The notes under the pieces were generated by a model. The model did no database searches. It had not been told where the DNA came from and saw nothing but the letters and a program-made list of their open reading frames with translations. A DNA stretch of 64,000 nucleotides from Blastocystis sp. Blastoise (lineage: Eukaryota; Protista; Bigyra: Opalinata): contig JBBPEB010000031.1 in NCBI GenBank assembly GCA_039096225.1, forward strand, positions 1 through 64,000, given 5' to 3'. Shown piece by piece: positions 21,921-64,000 of the stretch (its first letter is position 1; every line of letters starts with the position of its first letter). A program made the translations under genes and the position numbers.

Positions 21921-24900
21921 GTTGTGCAGTTGGGTTTTAAAATTATTTCTTTAACTTTATTGAACAAAACAACCTTGTTTATTATAAACATTTAAAAAAC
22001 AAATAAAAAGTGAAGAAGTAATAGATTAAAAAGAAAAAATAATTAACAAACATAAAACAAAAACAAACAAATATAACAAAAGAAGAAAAAAGAAAAAATA
22101 AAGCATTTAATTATTTAGAGTAGACCTGAAGACCACGTTCTTAGTAAATATTTCATTACTACTACTAATCATCTTACCTTGAGAGACACTATCAACTACC
22201 TTAATAAAAAGAGCGTTGAAAGATCGAGCACGACTGAAAGCAACATAGAGTTGACCATGAGAGAAGACAGGACGATCTAAGTAAACACCAACTCTTTCAA
22301 ATGTTTGTCCTTGAGATTTGTTGATAGTCATGGCAAAGGCTAAACGAATAGGAAATTGTCTTCTGGATATAATAATAGGAAGATCTTCAGGATTTGAATT
22401 ACAGATGATTCTTGGAATAATAACAGTTTGTTCATCAATAGTAAGAGAAGGAGGAGGATTTAAAATAGTAGCAGTAATATTATTTGATCCTAATCGAGTT
22501 ACTATAAGTCTAGTACCATTACATAATCCTTTAGAAGGATTAAGATTTCTTAAAAGCATAATGATACAACCTATTTTTAAATTTAATATATGAGGAGGCA
22601 TTCCAGAAGGTGTTTGAGAATTGATAAACTCGATAGGATAATTTGATTCTGGATCATCTGTTTCAGAATCAAGAATAGAATCAGAAGAGATATAAGGAGT
22701 AGTAGTTCCAGAAAGAAGATTATCAACAATGAAATCATTTAAAGTACCAACACAATCATTAGTAGAAGCTAATATAACAGAAGAAGCTAATCGTTTGATA
22801 TCAGAATCAAGAGAAGTATTGATTCGATGTCCAAATACAGTAACACATAAATCATCATTCACAATACATTGAGGAGGAATAGGAATATAATCTATATCTA
22901 AATGATGACTAATAGTATAATTATTAGAAAGAACACCATCTCCTACTTGTAATAACCATTGTCTAAAATCATCTGCTCCTTCTAAAGCTCTCATATTTCT
23001 TGATAAATGAATGACATTATTTTTGATAGAATTCCATAAGGAACAAAACTTTATAGAAGAACTAACAATCTGAGCTTGAGTTCCTTTTCTTATAACTGGT
23101 AAACATTGTCTGAAATCTCCTCCTAATACTACTGTTTTACCACCAAAAGGAATATCTAATTCTGTATTCATTATATCACATAATAATCTATGTACTACCA
23201 TAAAACAATCACCTTTCATCATAGGAGCTTCATCCCATATTATTAAATCAGCTATTCTTATTTCTTCTACTTTTCTTCTATCTCTAGCTAAATCTATATT
23301 TGAAGTAGAATCAGGATCAACATTCAAAGGAATACCAAATTGTTTATGAGCTGTTCTACCACCTGGTAATAAAGTAGAAGCAATTCCTGTTGAAGCTACA
23401 GGTAATACATTCTTATTATGTCCACGTAAATAACTTAATAAACTATTATATAAGAAAGTCTTTCCACTTCCACCTGGACCATCTATAAAGAAACATAACT
23501 TATCTTCTATTCTACTACTTTCTATTGAATGAATTACTCTATCAAATGCATTTCTTTGTTCTTCATTTAATAATTCTATTACTCTATTAGCTTCTTGTAA
23601 TTCTAATGTAGGATTATAATTATAATCATTATAATGATGTTGTTCTTCTACTTGAGGTAATCCTAAATCATTATAATTCACTCCTATACTTATCATCATC
23701 TCTTTTATATCTTGTAAAGTACGTATTTCATAATCTTGAAGAACACTATTAGTATCATCTTCTATAACACTTGATGAATCTAAATCTTGAGCTAAAGGAG
23801 TATTTATATAATCTATTTCATTATTATGCATTGAATGTTTATAATCCTCACTAAGAAATGATTTAAATCGAATCCAAAACTCTTTCACATTTGTTAATAA
23901 TGATTCTGAAATATAAGTAATAAATAATTGTCTCAATTGACATGGAGTAGCAAAAACAATAGCTTCTGAAAATGAATCAAATACTTCTCTCTCATTATTC
24001 AATAATCCTCTTGCTATAGCTGCTTCACTAAAGGTTCTATAAGGTTCATTACTATTCAATCCTTTTACTATCTTCAAAGAATCAAAGCTATCAGCTCCTT
24101 TCGTATTCAATAATAATAATCTCAAAGCATATCGTTCCTTATCTTTTGGATTCACATAATACATTCTTCCTAAAGCTTTTATATCTCTCTGACGTCTATT
24201 CCAAGTATTTGTATTCGATTTCCATACATAATATTTTGGTATTTCATGATAAGCATAAATAGGATATTTCTCATCTAATATTTTCAATAATTCTTCGGAT
24301 ATATTATCATCATCTACTTCATAACTATTTATTCTATTTATCTCTTCTAAACGAACTTGAATCAATTCTCTTTCTTCTTCTACATTATTCATATTACGAA
24401 TACCATGCTTCTTCTCTATATAATAATAAGTATATATCTTTCTTTGATTCTGAACTTCTTTCTCTAAATCAAAGTATTTTGTTAATTTAGTACCTTTCTC
24501 TAAACTATTCCTTAATGCTTCTACTTCATGTCCTTCTCGAAATAATATATATGGATCATCAGGTAAATGAATAGGTAATCTATTAATAGAAACAGAATTA
24601 TAAGTAATTTCAAAACAATTCAAACGATAAGAAGCTTCAGGAGGAGAAACATATCGACAATCTAAATAAGCTTGAGTTTCATCTACTATTCCATTATCAT
24701 TCACTCTTCTTAATTGAGCTATCACAGAATCATTTCCTTTTAATGCATACTTATATATATATTTTGTACTTTGAATATTACAACAGACTTCTACATTAAT
24801 ATGAGCTTGATATTTCAATAATAAATAAGGATTATAAGGAACTACCCAACGATTATCAATAGTATAAGTATTATGACTACGAATAAGAGTAATAGTTCTA

Positions 24901-26149
24901 TCAGGAATATTTCTTCTTTGATATAAAGGATAAGAATTTAAATGACAATTAGTTTGCTCTATATATTCTTTTGGAAATCTCTTACTACATTTACCTGTTG
25001 ATCTATCAATACAAACACAATTCGTATCATAATCAGGACCACATGGACCATGAATCATATGTTTCTTAACTAATTCATAAAGAAGAGGAGTTGATTCTTT
25101 ATCAGGAATCTCTGCACTTATTATACTATCTACTTCATCTTCTGTTCTATATTTAGAATTCGTATCTAAAATAATTAATATATGAGAATGTGGTAAACCT
25201 CTCTTTTGGAATTCCACTGAATATAATAAAGCTTCTACAGTACCAAATATATTCTTATCCTTTATATCAGAAAGTAATTGTTTCAACTTTAAATGAAACA
25301 CTCTTGAAACTAAATCTGGAAATTCATTAACAGTATAACCTTCTGGAATATTATTCTTTATTTCTAACCAATCTGGATTGCAAGTAAATGTTATAAATAA
25401 ATCAGGTTTACCATATTCTCGAACTACACTCATAGCATCCATATATTTCTGTTGCAAATTTCTTGGACTACCAACAAAAGAAGAAGGTAATATAATAGCT
25501 TTACCTATTCTATCTATATTTCTATCATTCTCATTTATTTGATCTCCTCTCTCTTCTAACATCATTACTATATATATGAGAATAGGCAAAAAAATTCCCA
25601 TTGGTCAGTTTTTGGAAAATGCATTTGATTGGCTACTATATACTATAGTTTGTCGCCGCAACTCCTCTAAACTTACGGGGAGTTAACTTTTGAGTGAAAC
25701 ACAGTTCAATAGGATATAACATGTAGTTGTGCACCATATATTTGGTTAAGCGATATAATTAATAATTAAAAAGATATTAATAAAAGAACAGAAAACATGA
25801 TTTTTGAGTCGTTTTTGATTGGCTCTTTGGGGTGACCCCGATAAAAATTGTTGACCAGACAATTGGAAAATAAACATGGGGTAAACTTGATTTTTTCTCA
25901 ATCCCACAATATACGTTATCCGTGTTTATTCTTTATATTTATCTATTTTTTAATACTTTTTCATATTGAACACGTGAGGCCTTAACGGTCAAATTTAGAT
26001 TCTTATTTTGACATGATATTCTGATTCAGGAGGTCGAAAAACCTAGGTGTACCAATTTTGAGTTCCTGAGGACGATTTTTGAGTGATCGATATTTTCTTC
26101 GATCTTCTTATAATGGACTAATATTGTATAATGGTAATCAATAGGTCCT

Positions 26150-28057: not shown

Positions 28058-31000
28058 AATTAATATTTAATAAATAATAAATAATATATATAATATATAA
28101 TATATAATATATAATAAATGACTCATATTAAAAACTATATATATATAATATATAAGATAAAAGATAATAAATATTTTTTATATACTCTTTATGCAGCCGC
28201 GGTCCGGGGCCGTTAGGCACTGGACCTGCGGCGTGACCCTAGTATTATTTATATTCTGATAAGTTGAAGCTCTTAACTTATTTTGATTATTTCGTATATA
28301 ATTAATTCTATTTTGTTCTACTCGAATATAATTATCAGTAATATATTGTAAAGTTAATTTCTTATATTTTAATAAATAATTATCATAAGGTGGATCTTTC
28401 ATTTGAAGCATATAATTATAATATTCTAACATAGTAATAGTAATTTGATTAGAACGATTCAATGATAATAAATCTGGATACCAACCTTGTCTTCCAGTTG
28501 GAAACATAACTGGATAAACCATACAATCTATATAAGAATTAGTATTCTTCATTACTATATATTGACCTGAAGTATAACGATTCTGTTCATTATTACTATT
28601 AGTAGCTACTATTTCCATACCACTTCTAGGAAAACAACAATAACTTCTTTCTGGCATTACTCCTCCTTCTCTATATTGATATATTACTGCTACTTCATCT
28701 ACTTGAGGAGTATTATATCTTCTTATATCAGGTACTTCTCTTCTTTGTTTCTTAAACTCTATTAATAAATTAATATTATTTCTATTCATTTGACTATTCT
28801 CTTCTAATACTTCATCTACTCTTTCTCGAAGTGAATTATATATTTGAGCTAATGGATGATATTCTCTTATTGTACTATCTAATATCTCTAAAATATTTGG
28901 TTTTAAATCACAAAAATATCGATTCATACTTCTCATATGAGTAGCTTCATCTCCATCTATCATATAATATTGATTGAATACAGGATGTCTTGTAGGATCA
29001 TTCACATCAAAATCTAAAGCACTCTTAAAAGTATGATATATATTACCTCCACATTTAAATAGTAAAGGTCCAGAAGAATTTCTTAAATCATCATCAGAAG
29101 TATTATTTCCAGCTAAAGAAGCTAAAGCAACAGAATTATTATATCGAATAATATTATTAATAAATTCTCTTGAATCTGGATTATCTCTTTGTAATAAAGA
29201 ACGAATAGTATTAGGAAGATCAGGAAGCTCAGGAAGAACTACTTTACCACTACCACAGCAAGTATAAAACTTATCATTCATTCCTTTCTCTAATTCAAAA
29301 TGTTTAGCATGACAATATTCACAATGAACATTAAAATCACCTAAATAATTAGCTTTATAAGTATTCAATGCTTCATTTAATACGAAATCACCATGAGAAT
29401 CTATATAAAATAATATAAAATAAATATTAAATATATATAAATACTTCTTTGAATAGAAGCAATACAATTATGTAATCCAGGATATAATAATCTTTGTTGA
29501 TTATCTATAAAAATAATTTGTTATTTAATTATTCATAAAGAATTATAAAAAATAAATAGCATACAAATATCTAAAGCTCTTCTTCTTCCTCTATTAATAA
29601 TAGGATGAATAATTATATCTTCTTCAACTATAAAAAAGTATTAAATAAATATATTTAAATAATAAAAAACATACTATTATCTGTTATAGGTCTTCTAATA
29701 GTTCTTACAACTGGTATTTCGTCATTATTTTGAGTATTACTATTAATATTAGGAAAAGGATCAATATAATCAGAATCAGAATCATTATCAGAAAAACTAC
29801 TACTACTACTACTACTACTATCACTTGAACTACTACTACTACTACTATTAGGTATTGTTGTTATAATTTCTGATTCATTATCATTATTTAAATTAATATG
29901 AGGAATATTTGTTAGAATACTTAAAGGAGGAAGAATAGGACTTAAATCAGGAATAGTTAAATAACTATTCATAATGGAATTAATAGATCTATTATTTCTA
30001 TGTATTATTGTTTCATTATTATTAGTATTAGTGTTATTTCTTGAATTATTTGTATTATCATTAATGATTGTAGAATTATTATTGTTAGATATATTTACAT
30101 CAGTTGGAATAGTAGTAACAACAGGTAAAGAGTGTGAAGAAGTATTAATAGAATCATTATTATTATTAGAAACAGAAGTATTTTTTTCTGTAGGTTGTAT
30201 AATAGTAGTTGATATAGGAATAGATTGATTATTATTATTAATTTGACTTTGAACAATAGATATGTTATTAATTGATTGATTAACTGGATTCATTTGATTG
30301 AATAGGTTTGAACCATTATTTAATATAGAATTATTATTATTTATTTGTGAATAACGATTATCGATATCAATATCAATATTGTTATTTGAATTATTGTTTT
30401 GAATGTTTTGTAAAGGAATATTATTTTGAAAATTAAAAGTCGAAAACAAAGCTAAAGGTTTTGAGTTAAAACCAAATGATTTAGATAAATCATTATTATT
30501 TATTTTATCCTTATTGGAACCTATATATATTAATTATTAGATATTAAATATATTATGTTTAAGTTTAGAATAAAGTTTAGTTGTGTAGTATATAAATTAA
30601 CTTTCATTGTTATAGTTGTTGAAGTATTTATTAATTAATATAAAGTATAACCTTTATTAATATAATATAATACATAGATATAGTATGATAATATATATAT
30701 TAATATAAAGTATAACATTTATTAATATAATAATACATACATAAGTATAGTATGATATATTAATTAATATAAAGTATAACCTTCATCAATATAATATGAT
30801 ACATAAGTATAGTATGATATATTAATTAATATAAAGTATAACCTTTATTAATATAATATAAGTCATAGATATCATTACTATATATATGAGAATAGGCAAA
30901 AAAATTCCCATTGGTCAGTTTTTGGAAAATGCATTTGATTGGCTACTATATACTATAGTTTGTCGCCGCAACTCCTCTAAACTTACGGGGAGTTAACTTT

Positions 31001-34996: not shown

Positions 34997-36354
34997 TTAG
35001 TAAATAAATATATAAATAGATAATAAAAAGAAAGCAGACAACAGAAAGCTATTATCTGTGAAAGAAAAAAAATAATAAAACAAAAGAAAAAGAAACTAAA
35101 ATAATAAATAATACTTACCCACAACTTTATTTGAACCTATATAAGTATAGAATATAATATAAGTATAAATATACATTGAATAATTGAAGAATTGTTGACA
35201 CCATCAACGACTGAAGAATTATTAACACCATCACCTATATATATATATACAATAGTATAAGTATAAATAAATAAATAATATTATATATATATATATATAC
35301 CTTTATATATATTAGTAGTAACTATATCAAGACCAACAACAGAGTCACACGATCCCAAATTAAAAGACACACCTATATAGAATCATAAAATAGAATAAAC
35401 ATAGATACATATATATATATATATATATATATACCTTCTGAAGAAGGAATAGAAGAATGACCATGTACTAACTGAGTTGAAGGACCTATATAAAAACAAA
35501 TAAGAAAGAATTAAAAGAATAATAAAAAATATATATATATGATATATCTATATACCTTTAGCATTAGAAGGATGATCACCATCAGATACAGTACCATGAA
35601 CAGAAGACACTATCAGAACAGAAGGACCTATATATATTTATAAAATAAAAGTAAATCAAAAAGAAGAAAAAGAAAATATATTATATATACCTTCTTTATG
35701 ATTAAGATCAGCACCAACATTCATAGCAACAGAAGAACCTATAATAACATATAAATAGGAAATAAAAGAAATAATTAAAAATAAATAAATAAATAAATGA
35801 TTACATACCTTGAAGACCATGAGAAGAGTTAGCATCACCATCAGTAGCATCAGCAACAACATCATCATGAGTATAAGAACCTATAGATAAATAAAAATAA
35901 AAAAAAAATAAAATAAATGATTGACAACATACCTTCAAGACCATTAGTGGAGTGTATATCATCATCAATAGCTCCAGCAACAGAGTCCACAACAACAGAA
36001 GAACCTATAGATAAATAAAAATATAAAAATAAAAACAAATGATTGACAACATACCTTCAAGACCACTTGAAAACATTATACCATCATCAGTAAAGGACAC
36101 CAAGGACAGAGAAGAGTCTAAGATAATATAAAATAATAAAACAAAAAGAAATGTATAAATATATACCTTCAAGACCATATTGATAAGCACCATCACCATC
36201 AATGACATCCATACTTGCATCCTGTTGAGTAGAAGAACCTATATATGAATAATAAAAAAAAATAAATACAATACATACTGGACCGTCTTTGAGAAACGTA
36301 TTTTTTTTGATTCAAGGACCTCCGCCTTGATGACATTCTGCCTTTTCTAGGCAT
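34997..36354 (-). CDS. Microexon-array gene, second intact copy (in A1)
   Basis: Same exons as 57906-59265; the differences I saw are in intronic homopolymer or AT runs. Confidence 0.85.
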
Positions 36355-50864: not shown

Positions 50865-53800
50865 TTAATTATTTAGAGTAGACCTGAAGACCACGTTCTT
50901 AGTAAATATTTCATTACTACTACTAATCATCTTACCTTGAGAGACACTATCAACTACCTTAATAAAAAGAGCGTTGAAAGATCGAGCACGACTGAAAGCA
51001 ACATAGAGTTGACCATGAGAGAAGACAGGACGATCTAAGTAAACACCAACTCTTTCAAATGTTTGTCCTTGAGATTTGTTGATAGTCATGGCAAAGGCTA
51101 AACGAATAGGAAATTGTCTTCTGGATATAATAATAGGAAGATCTTCAGGATTTGAATTACAGATGATTCTTGGAATAATAACAGTTTGTTCATCAATAGT
51201 AAGAGAAGGAGGAGGATTTAAAATAGTAGCAGTAATATTATTTGATCCTAATCGAGTTACTATAAGTCTAGTACCATTACATAATCCTTTAGAAGGATTA
51301 AGATTTCTTAAAAGCATAATGATACAACCTATTTTTAAATTTAATATATGAGGAGGCATTCCAGAAGGTGTTTGAGAATTGATAAACTCGATAGGATAAT
51401 TTGATTCTGGATCATCTGTTTCAGAATCAAGAATAGAATCAGAAGAGATATAAGGAGTAGTAGTTCCAGAAAGAAGATTATCAACAATGAAATCATTTAA
51501 AGTACCAACACAATCATTAGTAGAAGCTAATATAACAGAAGAAGCTAATCGTTTGATATCAGAATCAAGAGAAGTATTGATTCGATGTCCAAATACAGTA
51601 ACACATAAATCATCATTCACAATACATTGAGGAGGAATAGGAATATAATCTATATCTAAATGATGACTAATAGTATAATTATTAGAAAGAACACCATCTC
51701 CTACTTGTAATAACCATTGTCTAAAATCATCTGCTCCTTCTAAAGCTCTCATATTTCTTGATAAATGAATGACATTATTTTTGATAGAATTCCATAAGGA
51801 ACAAAACTTTATAGAAGAACTAACAATCTGAGCTTGAGTTCCTTTTCTTATAACTGGTAAACATTGTCTGAAATCTCCTCCTAATACTACTGTTTTACCA
51901 CCAAAAGGAATATCTAATTCTGTATTCATTATATCACATAATAATCTATGTACTACCATAAAACAATCACCTTTCATCATAGGAGCTTCATCCCATATTA
52001 TTAAATCAGCTATTCTTATTTCTTCTACTTTTCTTCTATCTCTAGCTAAATCTATATTTGAAGTAGAATCAGGATCAACATTCAAAGGAATACCAAATTG
52101 TTTATGAGCTGTTCTACCACCTGGTAATAAAGTAGAAGCAATTCCTGTTGAAGCTACAGGTAATACATTCTTATTATGTCCACGTAAATAACTTAATAAA
52201 CTATTATATAAGAAAGTCTTTCCACTTCCACCTGGACCATCTATAAAGAAACATAACTTATCTTCTATTCTACTACTTTCTATTGAATGAATTACTCTAT
52301 CAAATGCATTTCTTTGTTCTTCATTTAATAATTCTATTACTCTATTAGCTTCTTGTAATTCTAATGTAGGATTATAATTATAATCATTATAATGATGTTG
52401 TTCTTCTACTTGAGGTAATCCTAAATCATTATAATTCACTCCTATACTTATCATCATCTCTTTTATATCTTGTAAAGTACGTATTTCATAATCTTGAAGA
52501 ACACTATTAGTATCATCTTCTATAACACTTGATGAATCTAAATCTTGAGCTAAAGGAGTATTTATATAATCTATTTCATTATTATGCATTGAATGTTTAT
52601 AATCCTCACTAAGAAATGATTTAAATCGAATCCAAAACTCTTTCACATTTGTTAATAATGATTCTGAAATATAAGTAATAAATAATTGTCTCAATTGACA
52701 TGGAGTAGCAAAAACAATAGCTTCTGAAAATGAATCAAATACTTCTCTCTCATTATTCAATAATCCTCTTGCTATAGCTGCTTCACTAAAGGTTCTATAA
52801 GGTTCATTACTATTCAATCCTTTTACTATCTTCAAAGAATCAAAGCTATCAGCTCCTTTCGTATTCAATAATAATAATCTCAAAGCATATCGTTCCTTAT
52901 CTTTTGGATTCACATAATACATTCTTCCTAAAGCTTTTATATCTCTCTGACGTCTATTCCAAGTATTTGTATTCGATTTCCATACATAATATTTTGGTAT
53001 TTCATGATAAGCATAAATAGGATATTTCTCATCTAATATTTTCAATAATTCTTCGGATATATTATCATCATCTACTTCATAACTATTTATTCTATTTATC
53101 TCTTCTAAACGAACTTGAATCAATTCTCTTTCTTCTTCTACATTATTCATATTACGAATACCATGCTTCTTCTCTATATAATAATAAGTATATATCTTTC
53201 TTTGATTCTGAACTTCTTTCTCTAAATCAAAGTATTTTGTTAATTTAGTACCTTTCTCTAAACTATTCCTTAATGCTTCTACTTCATGTCCTTCTCGAAA
53301 TAATATATATGGATCATCAGGTAAATGAATAGGTAATCTATTAATAGAAACAGAATTATAAGTAATTTCAAAACAATTCAAACGATAAGAAGCTTCAGGA
53401 GGAGAAACATATCGACAATCTAAATAAGCTTGAGTTTCATCTACTATTCCATTATCATTCACTCTTCTTAATTGAGCTATCACAGAATCATTTCCTTTTA
53501 ATGCATACTTATATATATATTTTGTACTTTGAATATTACAACAGACTTCTACATTAATATGAGCTTGATATTTCAATAATAAATAAGGATTATAAGGAAC
53601 TACCCAACGATTATCAATAGTATAAGTATTATGACTACGAATAAGAGTAATAGTTCTATCAGGAATATTTCTTCTTTGATATAAAGGATAAGAATTTAAA
53701 TGACAATTAGTTTGCTCTATATATTCTTTTGGAAATCTCTTACTACATTTACCTGTTGATCTATCAATACAAACACAATTCGTATCATAATCAGGACCAC

Positions 53801-56597
53801 ATGGACCATGAATCATATGTTTCTTAACTAATTCATAAAGAAGAGGAGTTGATTCTTTATCAGGAATCTCTGCACTTATTATACTATCTACTTCATCTTC
53901 TGTTCTATATTTAGAATTCGTATCTAAAATAATTAATATATGAGAATGTGGTAAACCTCTCTTTTGGAATTCCACTGAATATAATAAAGCTTCTACAGTA
54001 CCAAATATATTCTTATCCTTTATATCAGAAAGTAATTGTTTCAACTTTAAATGAAACACTCTTGAAACTAAATCTGGAAATTCATTAACAGTATAACCTT
54101 CTGGAATATTATTCTTTATTTCTAACCAATCTGGATTGCAAGTAAATGTTATAAATAAATCAGGTTTACCATATTCTCGAACTACACTCATAGCATCCAT
54201 ATATTTCTGTTGCAAATTTCTTGGACTACCAACAAAAGAAGAAGGTAATATAATAGCTTTACCTATTCTATCTATATTTCTATCATTCTCATTTATTTGA
54301 TCTCCTCTCTCTTCTAACATATTATTTATATTCTGATAAGTTGAAGCTCTTAACTTATTTTGATTATTTCGTATATAATTAATTCTATTTTGTTCTACTC
54401 GAATATAATTATCAGTAATATATTGTAAAGTTAATTTCTTATATTTTAATAAATAATTATCATAAGGTGGATCTTTCATTTGAAGCATATAATTATAATA
54501 TTCTAACATAGTAATAGTAATTTGATTAGAACGATTCAATGATAATAAATCTGGATACCAACCTTGTCTTCCAGTTGGAAACATAACTGGATAAACCATA
54601 CAATCTATATAAGAATTAGTATTCTTCATTACTATATATTGACCTGAAGTATAACGATTCTGTTCATTATTACTATTAGTAGCTACTATTTCCATACCAC
54701 TTCTAGGAAAACAACAATAACTTCTTTCTGGCATTACTCCTCCTTCTCTATATTGATATATTACTGCTACTTCATCTACTTGAGGAGTATTATATCTTCT
54801 TATATCAGGTACTTCTCTTCTTTGTTTCTTAAACTCTATTAATAAATTAATATTATTTCTATTCATTTGACTATTCTCTTCTAATACTTCATCTACTCTT
54901 TCTCGAAGTGAATTATATATTTGAGCTAATGGATGATATTCTCTTATTGTACTATCTAATATCTCTAAAATATTTGGTTTTAAATCACAAAAATATCGAT
55001 TCATACTTCTCATATGAGTAGCTTCATCTCCATCTATCATATAATATTGATTGAATACAGGATGTCTTGTAGGATCATTCACATCAAAATCTAAAGCACT
55101 CTTAAAAGTATGATATATATTACCTCCACATTTAAATAGTAAAGGTCCAGAAGAATTTCTTAAATCATCATCAGAAGTATTATTTCCAGCTAAAGAAGCT
55201 AAAGCAACAGAATTATTATATCGAATAATATTATTAATAAATTCTCTTGAATCTGGATTATCTCTTTGTAATAAAGAACGAATAGTATTAGGAAGATCAG
55301 GAAGCTCAGGAAGAACTACTTTACCACTACCACAGCAAGTATAAAACTTATCATTCATTCCTTTCTCTAATTCAAAATGTTTAGCATGACAATATTCACA
55401 ATGAACATTAAAATCACCTAAATAATTAGCTTTATAAGTATTCAATGCTTCATTTAATACGAAATCACCATGAGAATCTATATAAAATAATATAAAATAA
55501 ATATTAAATATATATAAATACTTCTTTGAATAGAAGCAATACAATTATGTAATCCAGGATATAATAATCTTTGTTGATTATCTATAAAAATAATTTGTTA
55601 TTTAATTATTCATAAAGAATTATAAAAAATAAATAGCATACAAATATCTAAAGCTCTTCTTCTTCCTCTATTAATAATAGGATGAATAATTATATCTTCT
55701 TCAACTATAAAAAAGTATTAAATAAATATATTTAAATAATAAAAAACATACTATTATCTGTTATAGGTCTTCTAATAGTTCTTACAACTGGTATTTCGTC
55801 ATTATTTTGAGTATTACTATTAATATTAGGAAAAGGATCAATATAATCAGAATCAGAATCATTATCAGAAAAACTACTACTACTACTACTACTACTATCA
55901 CTTGAACTACTACTACTACTACTATTAGGTATTGTTGTTATAATTTCTGATTCATTATCATTATTTAAATTAATATGAGGAATATTTGTTAGAATACTTA
56001 AAGGAGGAAGAATAGGACTTAAATCAGGAATAGTTAAATAACTATTCATAATGGAATTAATAGATCTATTATTTCTATGTATTATTGTTTCATTATTATT
56101 AGTATTAGTGTTATTTCTTGAATTATTTGTATTATCATTAATGATTGTAGAATTATTATTGTTAGATATATTTACATCAGTTGGAATAGTAGTAACAACA
56201 GGTAAAGAGTGTGAAGAAGTATTAATAGAATCATTATTATTATTAGAAACAGAAGTATTTTTTTCTGTAGGTTGTATAATAGTAGTTGATATAGGAATAG
56301 ATTGATTATTATTATTAATTTGACTTTGAACAATAGATATGTTATTAATTGATTGATTAACTGGATTCATTTGATTGAATAGGTTTGAACCATTATTTAA
56401 TATAGAATTATTATTATTTATTTGTGAATAACGATTATCGATATCAATATCAATATTGTTATTTGAATTATTGTTTTGAATGTTTTGTAAAGGAATATTA
56501 TTTTGAAAATTAAAAGTCGAAAACAAAGCTAAAGGTTTTGAGTTAAAACCAAATGATTTAGATAAATCATTATTATTTATTTTATCCTTATTGGAAC
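50865..56597 (-). CDS. Helitron RepHel transposase (Asn/Ser-rich N-terminus, Cys/His cluster, HUH Y2 Rep, Pif1-family SF1B helicase); exons 56597-55752, 55704-55642, 55581-55522, 55477-50865; first exon not resolved; at least 1860 aa
   Basis: Rep motifs DLFITFTCNPDW, VEFQKRGLPHSHILI, KYIYKY; helicase motifs GPGGSGKT, IIWDEAPM, GGDFRQCLP, TINKSQGQT, HGQLYVAFSR; three GT-AG phase-1 introns join the 264-aa ORF to the main ORF in frame (exons of 846, 63 and 60 bp). Confidence 0.96.
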
Positions 56598-56704
56598 CTA
56601 TATATATTAATTATTAGATATTAAATATATTATGTTTAAGTTTAGAATAAAGTTTAGTTGTGTAGTATATAAATTAACTTTCATTGTTATAGTTGTTGAA
56701 GTAT

Positions 56705-57370
56705 TTATTAATTAATATAAAGTATAACCTTTATTAATATAATATAATACATAGATATAGTATGATAATATATATATTAATATAAAGTATAACATTTATT
56801 AATATAATAATACATACATAAGTATAGTATGATATATTAATTAATATAAAGTATAACCTTCATCAATATAATATGATACATAAGTATAGTATGATATATT
56901 AATTAATATAAAGTATAACCTTTATTAATATAATATAAGTCATAGATATAGTATGATATATTTATTAATATAAAGTATATAACTCTTATTAATATAATAT
57001 AATACATAGATATACTATGATATATTTATTAATATAAAGTATAACCTTTATTAATATAATATAATACATAAGTATAGTATGATATTATATATATTAATAT
57101 AAAGTATATAACCTTTATTAATATAATAATACATAGAATATACTATGATATATTAATTAATATAAAGTATAACATTTATTAATATAATAATACATAGATA
57201 TACTATGATATATTTATTAATATAAAGTATATAACCTTTATTAATATAATAATACATAGATATACTATGATATATTTATTAATATAAAGTATATAACCTT
57301 TATTAATATAATAATACATACATATAGTATGATATATTAAATAATATAAAGTAAAAACTTTATTAATTAA
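56705..57370. repeat. About 60-62-bp AT-rich minisatellite, roughly 11 units (in A1: 30628-30871 + 34041-34460)
   Basis: Unit ATTAATATAAAGTATATAACCTTTATTAATATAATAATACATAGATATACTATGATATATTT. Confidence 0.9.
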
Positions 57371-57905
57371 TAATTATCTTCAATACTATAATGTAATGAA
57401 AGATAATATTATAATTAATGAAAACTAATATTAAATAAGTATAGGTAATTAATATTGTATAATTTATTAAACAATCTATATGATTCAACCTCATAGAGGA
57501 CATCTATAGCTATTGTGCTTTGTTACAACATTCTATAAACATATAGCTAACTACCAGTTAATATCATATACAATGTGAGTAAGTGAAGAATCTTAACACT
57601 TAGATATCTCATCATTGATAGTATTACATCGGTTAGACTATATAGAGTTAGAAGCGAACAATAGTCAGCAATAGTATGAGTCATATAGGTAATCAATAGT
57701 TGTATTAATTAAATTAAATACAAATATTAAAATACTCAACACTATTTAATATTAAGTAATTCAAAAATTATCTTAATATCCGACACCTTCCCGTTAATCG
57801 ATACGATTAAAGTAAAATTAAAATAAAAAAAAAAAATAACAAAACAAAAATGAAAAAAGAAAGGATTCTATTAAATATTTAAATACTAAGTAGCTAAAGC
57901 TAAGC

Positions 57906-59265
57906 TTAGTAAATAAATATATAAATAGATAATAAAAAGAAAGCAGACAACAGAAAGCTATTATCTGTGAAAGAAAAAAAAATAATAAAACAAAAGAAAA
58001 AGAAACTAAAATAATAAATAATACTTACCCACAACTTTATTTGAACCTATATAAGTATAGAATATAATATAAGTATAAATATACATTGAATAATTGAAGA
58101 ATTGTTGACACCATCAACGACTGAAGAATTATTAACACCATCACCTATATATATATATACAATAGTATAAGTATAAATAAATAAATAATATTATATATAT
58201 ATATATATACCTTTATATATATTAGTAGTAACTATATCAAGACCAACAACAGAGTCACACGATCCCAAATTAAAAGACACACCTATATAGAATCATAAAA
58301 TAGAATAAACATAGATACATATATATATATATATATATATATACCTTCTGAAGAAGGAATAGAAGAATGACCATGTACTAACTGAGTTGAAGGACCTATA
58401 TAAAAACAAATAAGAAAGAATTAAAAGAATAATAAAAAATATATATATATGATATATCTATATACCTTTAGCATTAGAAGGATGATCACCATCAGATACA
58501 GTACCATGAACAGAAGACACTATCAGAACAGAAGGACCTATATATATTTATAAAATAAAAGTAAATCAAAAAGAAGAAAAAGAAAATATATTATATATAC
58601 CTTCTTTATGATTAAGATCAGCACCAACATTCATAGCAACAGAAGAACCTATAATAACATATAAATAGGAAATAAAAGAAATAATTAAAAATAAATAAAT
58701 AAATAAATGATTACATACCTTGAAGACCATGAGAAGAGTTAGCATCACCATCAGTAGCATCAGCAACAACATCATCATGAGTATAAGAACCTATAGATAA
58801 ATAAAAATAAAAAAAAAAATAAAATAAATGATTGACAACATACCTTCAAGACCATTAGTGGAGTGTATATCATCATCAATAGCTCCAGCAACAGAGTCCA
58901 CAACAACAGAAGAACCTATAGATAAATAAAAATATAAAAATAAAAACAAATGATTGACAACATACCTTCAAGACCACTTGAAAACATTATACCATCATCA
59001 GTAAAGGACACCAAGGACAGAGAAGAGTCTAAGATAATATAAAATAATAAAACAAAAAGAAATGTATAAATATATACCTTCAAGACCATATTGATAAGCA
59101 CCATCACCATCAATGACATCCATACTTGCATCCTGTTGAGTAGAAGAACCTATATATGAATAATAAAAAAAAATAAATACAATACATACTGGACCGTCTT
59201 TGAGAAACGTATTTTTTTTGATTCAAGGACCTCCGCCTTGATGACATTCTGCCTTTTCTAGGCAT
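57906..59265 (-). CDS. Microexon-array gene, 12 exons, 244 aa: basic N-terminus, Ser/Gly/Asp/Val-rich exon repeats, hydrophobic C-tail; function unknown
   Basis: Exons 59265-59190, 59149-59078, 59028-58966, 58915-58844, 58790-58719, 58648-58601, 58537-58466, 58395-58345, 58282-58211, 58144-58085, 58046-58029, 57964-57906; all introns GT-AG and phase 1; spliced frame open for 735 nt. Confidence 0.85.
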
Positions 59266-59819
59266 CTTATTTAATAATTTAATAAAAATAAGTATTTTTA
59301 TGTAGAAAACAAAAACATATTCATATTTGAACTTTTGTAAAATAGGGACAATATTTAAAATATGCATATTTAAAAATTAATAGGAATCATAAATAACCTC
59401 GAATTTTTATTATTATCTTATGCTAAGCTGATAATAGGGACATTTTTTATTAAAAACATTTTGGGTACCCAAAAACTATAGTTTTTTACATTTTTTAAAT
59501 ATTTGTTTGTATTGATTGTCTGGGTATGTTTTATTAATTAATTTGATGTTATTTAGTTATTATTTTTATATTTATTTGTATATATTAATTTATTTATTTA
59601 TAACTAGGGTCACGCCGCAGGTCCGGGGCCTAACGGCACCGGACCGCGGCTGCAATGAATAATAACTGTTTGGTTTTTATTTACTTTCTTTCCTTTTTAT
59701 CTATTATATATTATATATTATATATTATATAATATATATTATTTATTAAATATTATCTATAATATGTTACTTATTATATATTATATATTATATATTATAT
59801 ATATTATTTTAATAACACT

Positions 59820-59887
59820 TCTTATACTCTATATGGAGAGTAGCAATCATTTATTGATTGTAATCAGGTTCAATTCCTGATATAAGA
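59820..59887 (+). ncRNA. tRNA-like cloverleaf, 3'-end type
   Basis: Same as 1651-1718. Confidence 0.7.
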
Positions 59888-61259
59888 ACTAAATAGATTA
59901 TTTGAATAGTATCTGAAAAACTAAAAACAATACTTGAAGAAAATAAGAAATCCTTTTTGAATCATTATATTTGTTATTTATTATTTTAAAAATATATTTT
60001 GTATTTATAAATAGTTAAATTACTGTTTTAATTATTATGGAGTTTCTAAAGGTAATAAATTTAGAAATGGGTCATAATGTTAAGTATTGAAAAATATTTT
60101 TATGTTGTAAAATCATTTTAAATAGATTATAATAAAATAGCATAAACTTATTTTAATCATTTCATAAAAATAAAACAAATCTAACACAACAAAGTCAACA
60201 TTCATTTTGACTTTAACGACTTAAACACAAAGTTTTTGAATTAATATTAATAAATTCAATCTAAATAGCATTTCTAAACACAAAAGTGTCAACAATATTA
60301 CTTTTAGAGAGACTTTACCATTTCGATATCAAGTGTATCAAAATAGTTTTAGACATAACTTCCACATAGTATAGATCTCATTATTTTATTTATTAATTCA
60401 AGTTTAATGTCTTGAATCTCTGACTTCAAGATCATTTTTAACACATTTTGAAAGGTTGACACACTTATAATTAATTTTAAAAGCTAATATTATAACACTA
60501 TACTCATCATAACTCTATCAACATAAGAGTCACCATTTTGACACTCTTTATAAACATTTTACATTTGGTCATACACTTTGTCAAGTGTATTTTTGTCCTT
60601 TCTTTTGATATAATTTAGAATATAATTCATAGTTTGATAAATAAAATATTTTATATTGAATCTCATCCTTTGGATAATTCATTTCTACATTTAAAAATAT
60701 TAATCCCTTTAAACTTGTTTTTAAAAGTCAAAATTTTCATAGTCTAATGAAAACACAATTTTAAAAGAATATACTAACTCTTTAAAATTTCTAGACAACT
60801 CAAACACATTGTTAATTCACTTTTCAAAAATGAAATTCTCTTATTTTTTAATATGTTGTAGAATTTAGCTTATTATATATTAAACTTCTATTAGAATTTC
60901 GAATCTCCTATTTTAAGATAATATTTTTTATTTTACAACCTTAAAGTTACTTTTATGAGTTAATACGTTCACAAAATTATGTAAATATAAATGCTAGTAA
61001 ACAGAGAAACTCAAAACTTAAATATCTCAATTATTGACAGTTTTAAATCAGTAATACTATACAGTGTTAAAAGTGACAATAAATGTTTTAAAATTTAATT
61101 CAAATATTTAAAAACTTGACACTATTTAACATACTAAGTATTTCAAGAATTATCTTAATAGTCGACACAATTTAAATAAAAAAAAAAAGAAAAAGAACAA
61201 AACAAAAATAGCAAAAGAAAACATTTAAATATAGAATAGCTAAAACGATAACAACAGCA

Positions 61260-62655
61260 TAAATAAATAAATAATATAAAGAAAGCAGATAATAGAAAGC
61301 TATTAAATGTGAAAAATAATAATAATAATAAACAAAAGAAAAAGAAAAAGAACTAAAAAAAAAAAAATCTAAACATAACCATAACACTAAGAGAACCTAT
61401 ATAGATAAAAGATATATATATATAATAAGAGATAGTATAATAAATATATCTAACATATATATATTAAAAGAAATATTATAAATATTTGTTATATATATAT
61501 ATATATACCTTTAGATACATTTTTATTATTAAAATGAAAGCTAACATTAGGGTGATAAGATCCCCTATTAGAAAAGACACCTATATATAATATAATAAAT
61601 GATAAAATATATATAAACAATAAATATATATATATACCTTCTAAAGAAGGAACAGAGGAATCACCATGATATCTTAACTGACTTGAAGAACCTATATATA
61701 ATGAAAAGATAATTAATAAATCAAAAAAAAAGAAAGGAAGAAATAAGAATATACCTGTATCATTATTACTATTAATCCAAGACTCCATAAGAAAAGAACG
61801 ACCTATATAAGATAAAAATAATAATAAACTAAATTAAATTTAAAAAGTAGACATACCTTCATCATTAATACGTTCAGCAACTACAACCACAACAGTAGAA
61901 TAACCTATAAAGAAACAGTAATAGACAAATAATAAATAAAAAAAAAATAATAATAAATGAATGACAATATATATATACCTTTAATATCATATGAGCAGTC
62001 TACCTGATCACCAACAACATCCATAGCAACATTTACATCAATAAAACAAATCTATATATATAAAAGTAAAAAAAAAAATAAATGAATGACAACATACCTT
62101 CAACACCACACAGACATCTATTATCAACATCACTGTTAACATGTACAACAACTGAAGAACCTATATATATATAGAAATAATAAAAAAATAATAATAAAAT
62201 ATAAAAAAAAAATAAATGATTGGTAACATACCATCTATAAAGCAAGAAGAACCTACATCAACACCGATATCACTATTGGAATCACTTACAATAACAGAAG
62301 AACCTATAAATAAAGAAAAGTTAAAAAAATAAAAACAAATCATTGACAACATACCTTCACAGTTAGCATAACAGGCAACACCACCACCACTGCATAATTC
62401 AAATAGCATAGAAGAACCTAAAATAATATAATAAATAATTAAAAAAAAAAGAAATGGAAAAATATATACCTTAAAGACCATCATAGCAAGTACCACCAAG
62501 ACCAAGAGCATACACAACTGGATTTTATTGAGTAGAAGAACCTAAATATGAATAATAATAACAAATAGATATAATATACCTGATTTTCTTTGAAATATAA
62601 ATTATTTTTTATTTCCAGGCCTCCTCCTGGATGACATTTTGTTGTTTTCAGACAT
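61260..62655 (-). pseudogene. Decayed microexon-array paralog in B4 (3' limit approximate)
   Basis: B-like exons with the same stops; exon 1 is a variant haplotype. Confidence 0.72.
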
Positions 62656-63443
62656 CTTATTTAATAATATAATATACAATTAAGTATTTGAATATGTATT
62701 TAAGAATCCTATTTCATTTGTATTAATAAATATAATAGGGTCTATTTTCAAAATATGCTTCTTTAAACATAATAGAAATAAAAAAAAACCTTAATTTTTT
62801 ATTGATTTTGTTACTAAAGTAATAATTGGGTCATTCTTATTTAAAATCATTTTGGGTACCCAAAAAACATAGTTCTTTACTCTTTTTTTAAATATTTAAT
62901 TATATTGATTGACTGAGTATGTTTTATTTATTTATTTGATATTGTTTAGTTATTATTTTTATATATATTTGTATGTATATATTTATTTATTTAAAATAAT
63001 ACACTTTTCTATAGGATTCTTTTGTATTTTCCTTGGTTGTGGTGTTGAAGTGTTCTTGAAGTGGTCTTGGCTGTGTAAAATGGTTTATTTATGATCAGGT
63101 ATATAAATATATTATTTATTTCTTAAGATCTGTTTTTCTTTTTGTTAATTCGTTTTTATTATTTATTATTTTTATTATCAATATTATTTATTTAGTCTTT
63201 ACATATAATTTATTCTATATATTATTAATAATTTTTATTCTATAGGAAAGAAACTTTAATGGATGTGTTGTGGTCTTCGTTGCTAAATATTTTCCTTCTT
63301 TAATCTGTCGTTCAAGGTTATTTTAAAGGTATATATTTATATTTTATTTATTATTTTTATTATTTATTGTTTACTTTTTTTTTATTATTTATTTATTTAT
63401 TTATTATTTATTTATTCATTTTTTTTATATGTTTATTTATTTA

Positions 63444-63492
<49 letters not shown>

Positions 63493-64000
63493 TGTTTATT
63501 ATTTATTTATTTATTTATTTATTTATTATGTTTATTTATTGTATATAGGTTTAATATTCTTCTTAGTTTTTTTTTTTCTTCTTTCTATCTTCGTTCTTCT
63601 TCCTTCTTACTTCTTCCTTCTTCCTCATCTTTCCTACTTACTTCTTCTTCCTTCCTTCTTCTTCCTTCTTCCTTCTTCCTATTTCCTTCTTCATTCCTTC
63701 TTCCTTCTTCCTATTTCCTTCTCCATTCATGCTTCCTTCTTCCTATTTCATTCTTCATTCATGCTTCCTACTTCCTACTTCCTTCTTCCTTCTTCCTCAT
63801 CTTTGATTCTTCTTACTTACTTCTTCTTCATTCTGGATTCTTCCTTCTTCCTCATCCTTCCTTATTCTTACTTCTTCTTACTTCCTTCTTTCTCATCCTT
63901 CTTCCTCATCCTTCCTTATTCTTACTTCTTCTTCCTAATCCTTCCTACTTCCTTCTTCCTCATCCTTCCACTTCATTTCCTTCTTATTATATATATATAA

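Follow-up and report, generated by a model that had tools for sequence, protein, structure and literature searches.

A micro-exon array in a Blastocystis Helitron is very probably the 5' part of the element's own transposase gene

We analyzed a stretch of 64,000 nucleotides of Blastocystis sp. Blastoise (contig JBBPEB010000031.1, positions 1 to 64,000), called the window throughout. The genome is that of strain Rus-B ('Blastoise'), whose host is the Russian tortoise, and it was annotated by BRAKER3, StringTie, and Mikado with RNA-seq (PMC10690189, which names BioProject PRJNA1041441). The genome paper makes no mention of Helitrons. On the minus strand of the window, from 59265 to 58029, a 76-nt start exon is followed by ten phase 1-1 exons, separated by GT-AG introns of 38-70 nt. 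The features of this locus and its surroundings are as follows.

59190-59265, minus strand: exon 1, 76 nt, with the ATG at 59265 and a phase-1 donor; N-terminus of the public protein P0122
58029-59149, minus strand: exons 2-11, ten symmetric phase 1-1 micro-exons and nine short introns
59149-59078, 59028-58966, 58915-58844, 58790-58719, and 58648-58601, minus strand: exons 2-6
58537-58466, 58395-58345, 58282-58211, 58144-58085, and 58046-58029, minus strand: exons 7-11
56598-58028, minus strand: intron 11, 1431 nt, phase 1, from GTAAGT to TATAG; includes a minisatellite and the proposed terminal exon
57906-57964, minus strand: proposed terminal exon, 59 nt, with a CACAG acceptor, a hydrophobic tail, and TAA; intronic in the public models
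55752-56597, minus strand: exon 12 of the 15-exon gene, 846 nt, open in phase 1 from the acceptor; Asn/Ser-rich low-complexity product
55704-55642, minus strand: exon 13, 63 nt, phase 1-1
55581-55522, minus strand: exon 14, 60 nt, phase 1-1
50865-55477, minus strand: exon 15, 4613 nt including the stop, with Rep (Helitron_like_N) and PIF1 helicase domains
59604-59655, minus strand: 3' end of another Helitron copy, with a GC-rich hairpin at about 59614-59650 and CTAG at 59607-59604
34997-36354, minus strand: second array, with exon peptides identical to those of the first; its RepHel gene is disrupted by nested insertions
61259-62641, minus strand: decayed remnant of an array, 67-73% identity; the copy is non-autonomous ('type B/C'), and its exon-2 homologue is interrupted by in-frame stops

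A sequence-only reading of this DNA had proposed a hidden 12-exon cargo gene at 59265-57906, built from symmetric micro-exons. Rebuilt from the window DNA, that model has exons of 76, 72, 63, 72, 72, 48, 72, 51, 72, 60, 18, and 59 nt, the second to eleventh values being those of array exons 2-11, and encodes 244 aa. An exon finder blind to this model was run, in which segments between AG/ and /GTA with a length that is a multiple of 3 and an open phase-1 frame were scored by GC log-odds and chained by dynamic programming, exon 1 having been anchored by a sequence motif before chaining. Exons 2-11 were recovered de novo and the chain ended at exon 11, so that the claimed micro-exons, with their GT-AG sites and phase 1-1 boundaries, were confirmed where they had been placed. 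Their GC content is 32-42%, against about 12% in the introns and about 23% in the window.

Exons 2-5 are mutually paralogous (z 4.8-11.9), exon 6 is paralogous to exons 4-5 only (z 4.6-4.9), and introns 3 and 4 are homologous (z 10.7). Hence, the tandem duplication of exon and intron units suggested for the array holds for this part, with exon 6 partly included, and not for the rest. The recurrent G-S-S starts and E/Q/K ends of the exon peptides arise because the splice consensus sequences AAG/GTA and TAG/GTTC are read in phase 1.

Two open reading frames lie downstream on the same strand, one of 264 aa with no Pfam match (56526-55732) and one of 1559 aa (55544-50865) that contains Helitron_like_N, PIF1, and Pif1_2B domains (PF14214, 2.2e-56; PF05970, 2.1e-64; PF21530, 2.5e-19). 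The RepHel protein also has a Cys/His-rich motif ahead of Rep. The 264-aa frame extends upstream, in frame, to a TATAG/G acceptor at 56598/56597 in phase 1. Codons 1-75 of this 846-nt exon (1-64 in one subfamily) contain neither a Met nor a stop in 9 copies, which represent several subfamilies, and in this stretch of 19% GC the two remaining frames are interrupted by 4-5 and 17-20 stops. A start that lacks both Met and stops indicates that coding sets in at the acceptor and that a phase-1 exon must precede it. Exon 11 faces this exon (56597-55752) across the 1431-nt phase-1 intron. When the 15 window exons were joined in silico, the product was 2085 aa long and matched P0122 at each residue. 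The gene spans 59265 to 50865 and has 14 introns, all in phase 1 and all with TAG acceptors, of 40, 49, 50, 53, 70, 63, 70, 62, 66, 38, 1431, 47, 60, and 44 nt, in order; intron 11 is thus an outlier against the 38-70-nt introns of the same gene. The ten symmetric array exons account for 600 nt of the 6258-nt coding sequence.

We therefore assign the stretch, with considerable confidence though from sequence, to the Helitron itself, as the 5' portion of its RepHel (transposase) gene, which has 15 exons and encodes 2085 aa. The separate 12-exon, 244-aa cargo gene was not borne out, as exon 11 runs in phase into the Met-less 846-nt exon and on into RepHel, and the joined translation is that of P0122.

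The same structure was found in the public annotation. A word search with the RepHel frame returned 'hypothetical protein WA158_002607 [Blastocystis sp. Blastoise]', 2079 aa and 100% identical. The protein cluster comprises P0122 (2085 aa, KAK8799414.1/KAK8800782.1), P0123 (2086 aa), P0131 (2083 aa), and P0125 (624 aa, from a truncated element). All four begin with the micro-exon peptides, and the exon-11 peptide, ending in SNKVV, passes directly into GSNKDKINNN, which is the start of the 846-nt exon; the public proteins then run into RepHel. At other loci and subfamilies, the same junction of exon 11 to exon 12 is present in P0001, P0123, P0131, and P0125. The gene was therefore hidden in the open reading frame track and not in the annotation, where its exons already stood. 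The public model of the 15-exon gene may rest on prediction instead of junction reads, and the genome paper counts the merging of neighbouring genes among the known annotation errors (PMC10690189). A search of contig records for P0122 and P0013 gave no matches, the window's own genome having probably been left out.

Some public models of related copies have peculiar features. In P0130, P0132, P0133, and P0134, another element is nested in the long intron, and the annotated short first exons (for example, MQPRSG) reach the GC-rich hairpin of the nested copy; they are likely annotation artefacts. At contig 15:194306-210535, there are two head-to-head RepHel copies with one in-frame TGA each, and their public models (P0124 and P0127) have an extra intron that skips the Cys/His motif, apparently added by the annotation to get around a broken copy.

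The terminal exon and stop that the cargo gene was said to own fared poorly. The 59-nt exon was not recovered by the de novo exon finder, its acceptor at 57965 is used by none of the public models of this family, and this acceptor is a CAG, against TAG at all 14 acceptors in use. Use of 57906-57964 as an alternative last exon is possible, and the gene could then make both products, the exon 11 donor being joined usually to 56598, giving the transposase, and sometimes to 57965, giving a 244-aa protein of the leader with a short hydrophobic tail. The near acceptor has a polypyrimidine tract and has been kept in every subfamily, even the most diverged one, and the frame beyond it stops within 11-20 codons across subfamilies. 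In other transposon classes, shortened N-terminal forms of the transposase are known to act as regulators, and a short product might act likewise here. However, AT-rich introns all stop quickly, so the early stop carries no weight, and the tail is ordinary T-rich intron sequence, which a 1-nt deletion makes shorter in the C4 subfamily. Together with the CAG and the public models, these points make a dual product unlikely. The Blastocystis 'downstream gene element' was also considered as a polyadenylation cue after 57906 and was ruled out, as the motif is not enriched in tortoise isolates (PMC10690189).

Intron 11 varies in length among the subfamilies (851-1494 nt), being 851 nt in C4 and C24 and 1431-1494 nt in the others. 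A minisatellite of AT-rich units of about 60 nt lies inside it at about 56705-57370, and the length differences indicate that its repeat number varies.

The genome holds about 20 RepHel copies with 99-100% amino acid identity. The 846-nt exon lies just upstream in nearly all of them, and the array lies 0.85-1.5 kb further upstream in most, or farther where another element is nested in the long intron. We found at least six array versions, whose DNA identity to the window copy is 100, 95, 93, 85, 81, and 75%. Each is open in phase 1 and ends in the 18-nt exon, whose donor faces the acceptor of the same 846-nt exon. Frequent stops in other autonomous copies, which would speak against a coding array, were looked for; the arrays of the five diverged subfamilies have kept their frame open and in phase 1 and are spliced into the same exon.

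The 33-Mb genome gave 78 DNA matches to the array, and all are array copies; a host paralogue outside Helitron 5' regions, which the sequence-only reading had suggested searching for, was not found in the genome DNA at 65% identity or more, and every copy that was paired with a RepHel gene or inspected lies in a Helitron 5' region. The array had been described as intact only in the autonomous element, and this did not hold. The identical second array at 34997-36354 is intact beside a disrupted RepHel gene (exon 12 at 29658-30521, RepHel pieces at 22110-25565 and 28178-29467), and the truncated element on contig 14 (P0125) also has an intact array. The different exon set and the stops described for types B and C were seen, including in the window at 61259-62641. 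These copies (67-75% identity) share the 5' region of the element and have an in-frame stop in the exon-2 homologue, and their arrays are decaying remnants in non-autonomous derivatives. Additionally, one subfamily on contigs 15 and 31 has a near-identical RepHel and no array, its N-terminus consisting of a 65-aa exon, with a basic run first, and a 17-aa exon; the array may therefore be dispensable for the transposase. Retention next to RepHel had been taken as a sign of an element function. Intact arrays are indeed always linked to RepHel; such linkage would be expected of an array that forms the 5' portion of the frame encoding RepHel.

Comparison of the subfamily arrays showed exon length changes of 72 to 66, 48 to 30, 72 to 54, 72 to 30, 72 to 69, and 60 to 33 nt, all differing by multiples of 3, and two additional 33-nt exons, whereas the intron length differences are unrestricted (1, 2, 3, 7, 8 nt, and so on). 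Between subfamilies, identity is 77-94% in the micro-exons, 81-98% in the introns, 95-98.5% in the 846-nt exon, and 98-99.5% at the start of the RepHel exon. The C24 array, for example, matches the window copy with an identity of 92% or more over exons 2-6 and of 66-76% over exons 7-11. Such block-wise differences indicate that the arrays are mosaics from exchange between older lineages.

The dN/dS of the array between subfamilies ranges from 0.37 to 1.88 and is about 1 overall, so that residues drift, yet the frame is kept. The exons can appear more diverged than the introns (for example, 94.0 versus 97.8% identity), and diversifying selection was considered for this reason. It was ruled out, as the rates match once the sites are split: exon and intron divergence is 0.105-0.170 versus 0.108-0.187 at G/C-containing sites and 0.010-0.028 versus 0.010-0.017 at A/T-only sites. 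For the most diverged pair, a stop-free outcome by chance has a P of 0.009-0.055. All GT/AG sites are kept across the six versions, whose exons retain a GC content near 40%, with about 12% in their introns. As read from these alignments, the leader sequence drifts near-neutrally while frame, splice sites, and exon GC are retained. A constraint on the frame only fits a leader before an essential reading frame better than a stand-alone 244-aa gene.

This bears on the original proposal, namely a cargo gene of 12 exons, captured or accessory, that stands apart from RepHel and ends in a terminator of its own, RepHel then having its promoter inside 58028-56598. The 12-exon model is open with canonical GT-AG sites, and the Met at codon 76 of the 846-nt exon could start a shorter RepHel; nonetheless, the 75 Met-less codons before that Met are open in 9 copies. 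Moreover, a dN/dS of about 1 gives a stand-alone gene no reason to stay open, no host paralogue was found outside Helitron 5' regions at the identity searched, and the two parts are joined in the public models. We consider a cargo gene very improbable. That the array is noncoding, a chance or decaying 5' UTR repeat with translation from Met 76 of the large exon, is hardly credible: it drifts at the intron rate and is absent from one subfamily, but six versions show only 3n length changes, no stops, all GT/AG sites kept, and exon GC near 40%.

In the 15-exon RepHel gene, exons 1-11 encode a leader of 225 aa. Residues 1-25 form a basic head, MPRKGRMSSRRRSLNQKKYVSQRRS, with a net charge of +10, whereas the remaining 200 residues are acidic, with a net charge of -24; Ser, Val, Gly, and Asp make up more than half of the leader. 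No signal peptide was recognized, as the N-terminus has a net charge of +10 over 25 aa without a hydrophobic core. The basic head resembles a nuclear localization signal and most likely would serve nuclear import. A Pfam search of the first 624 aa (P0125) matched no family even at E values up to 1. The Atlas model of the N-terminal part has a pTM of 0.18 and a mean pLDDT of 0.39, and the predicted 200-aa acidic stretch is probably disordered. A structure search had been suggested for the product. For the public protein, ESM Atlas look-alikes of residues 1-220 gave no usable feature match, and the structural matches rest on the low-confidence model with a pLDDT of 0.39 and are meaningless.

The region upstream of the array was also inspected. 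The 3' end of another Helitron, a 13-bp GC hairpin followed by CTAG, adjoins TTATAAAT at 338 nt upstream of the ATG. The element is continuous across this point in ten other copies (..GTGTATTA/TTATAAAT..), which indicates that a Helitron copy was inserted in the 5' region of this element at an A/T (TA/TT) site. Because of this nested copy, the window gene may not be expressed normally. Position 59603 was considered as the 5' end of the element and was ruled out, as it is the insertion point of the nested copy. Copies that lack this interruption have, in the 1.5 kb before the ATG (L003, 1-1160), a (GGAAGAAG)n-like purine satellite, a (AAATAAAT)n satellite, and a tRNA-like GGAATTGAACC.. piece; an ARAGORN search of window positions 56000-64000 called no tRNA.

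At least three RepHel families are present in the genome, each with many near-identical open copies. The second is 43% identical to the array-linked family, and the third (P0013, 2508 aa) shares about 50% identity with the second. In the 2508-aa family, about 885 N-terminal residues were missed by a six-frame search. Two further loci, L037 (contig 31:552741-553701) and L047, have nine symmetric phase-1 exons of 39-81 nt that encode Lys/Ser/Asn-rich peptides; this chain is distinct from the window array, and a variant RepHel N-terminal exon follows 4.4 kb downstream of it. Leaders built from micro-exons may be a shared feature of the Helitrons in the Blastocystis sp. Blastoise genome.

Under the RepHel reading, exon 11 would be spliced over the 1431-nt intron to the Asn/Ser-rich 846-nt exon, then to two exons of 60-63 nt and to the 4.6-kb Rep-helicase exon. 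Because every array exon is symmetric (phase 1-1), leader units can change without breaking the frame; we infer that units can be duplicated, lost, resized by 3n, or exchanged while the downstream transposase frame stays intact. The main targets of selection would then be an unbroken frame, the splice sites, and possibly the overall composition, not the residues, and the acidic stretch could be a spacer, a regulator, or dispensable. The symmetry also makes in-frame exon skipping structurally possible. It is rather doubtful that the leader is used and not just tolerated, with skipped-exon or near-acceptor isoforms, or a leader-only protein, tuning or inhibiting Helitron transposition; if it were so, the block-wise exchange of modules between subfamilies would be a way to diversify transposition control.

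If the gene is as we describe it, a false lead is removed, since no hidden cargo gene would exist here, and the locus is reduced to a modest curiosity, namely a Helitron family of recent activity whose transposase gene has phase-1 introns only. It would also be a clean natural example of how symmetric exons let a coding region expand, shrink, and recombine before an essential enzyme. For annotation, it serves as a warning that ORF-based searches for Helitrons in AT-rich, intron-rich protists lose the true N-terminus.

The gene resembles the RepHel genes of known Helitrons (Rep HUH nuclease and PIF1-type helicase; for example, Helraiser and plant and animal Helitrons) in its Helitron_like_N, PIF1, and Pif1_2B domains, the Cys/His-rich motif before Rep, the many near-identical and nested copies, and a neighbouring copy with a GC hairpin and CTAG 3' end and insertion at an A/T site. 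It differs from them in a 225-aa leader on eleven small exons, ten of them symmetric, in 14 introns that are all in phase 1, and in a leader that differs by 6-23% between subfamilies, whereas the start of the catalytic exon is 98-99.5% identical. A literature search found no published account of such a micro-exon leader layout, which is no proof of its absence.

The sequence-only reading had compared the array with the micro-exon genes (MEGs) of Schistosoma, and the likeness lies in short symmetric exons of 3n nt, partly tandem duplicates, whose skipping is frame-neutral. However, the array exons are mostly 48-72 nt, against 6-36 nt in MEGs, the N-terminus is strongly basic with no signal peptide, and the array encodes no small secreted protein but just the leader of a transposase of 2085 aa. 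Symmetric micro-exons make up 600 of 6258 nt of the coding sequence here, not most of it. Like the gene fragments captured by Helitrons in maize and bats, the array lies inside a Helitron and is copied along with the element. Unlike them, it has no host donor gene that we found, it is in frame with and spliced to the transposase, and it is open in all RepHel-linked copies.
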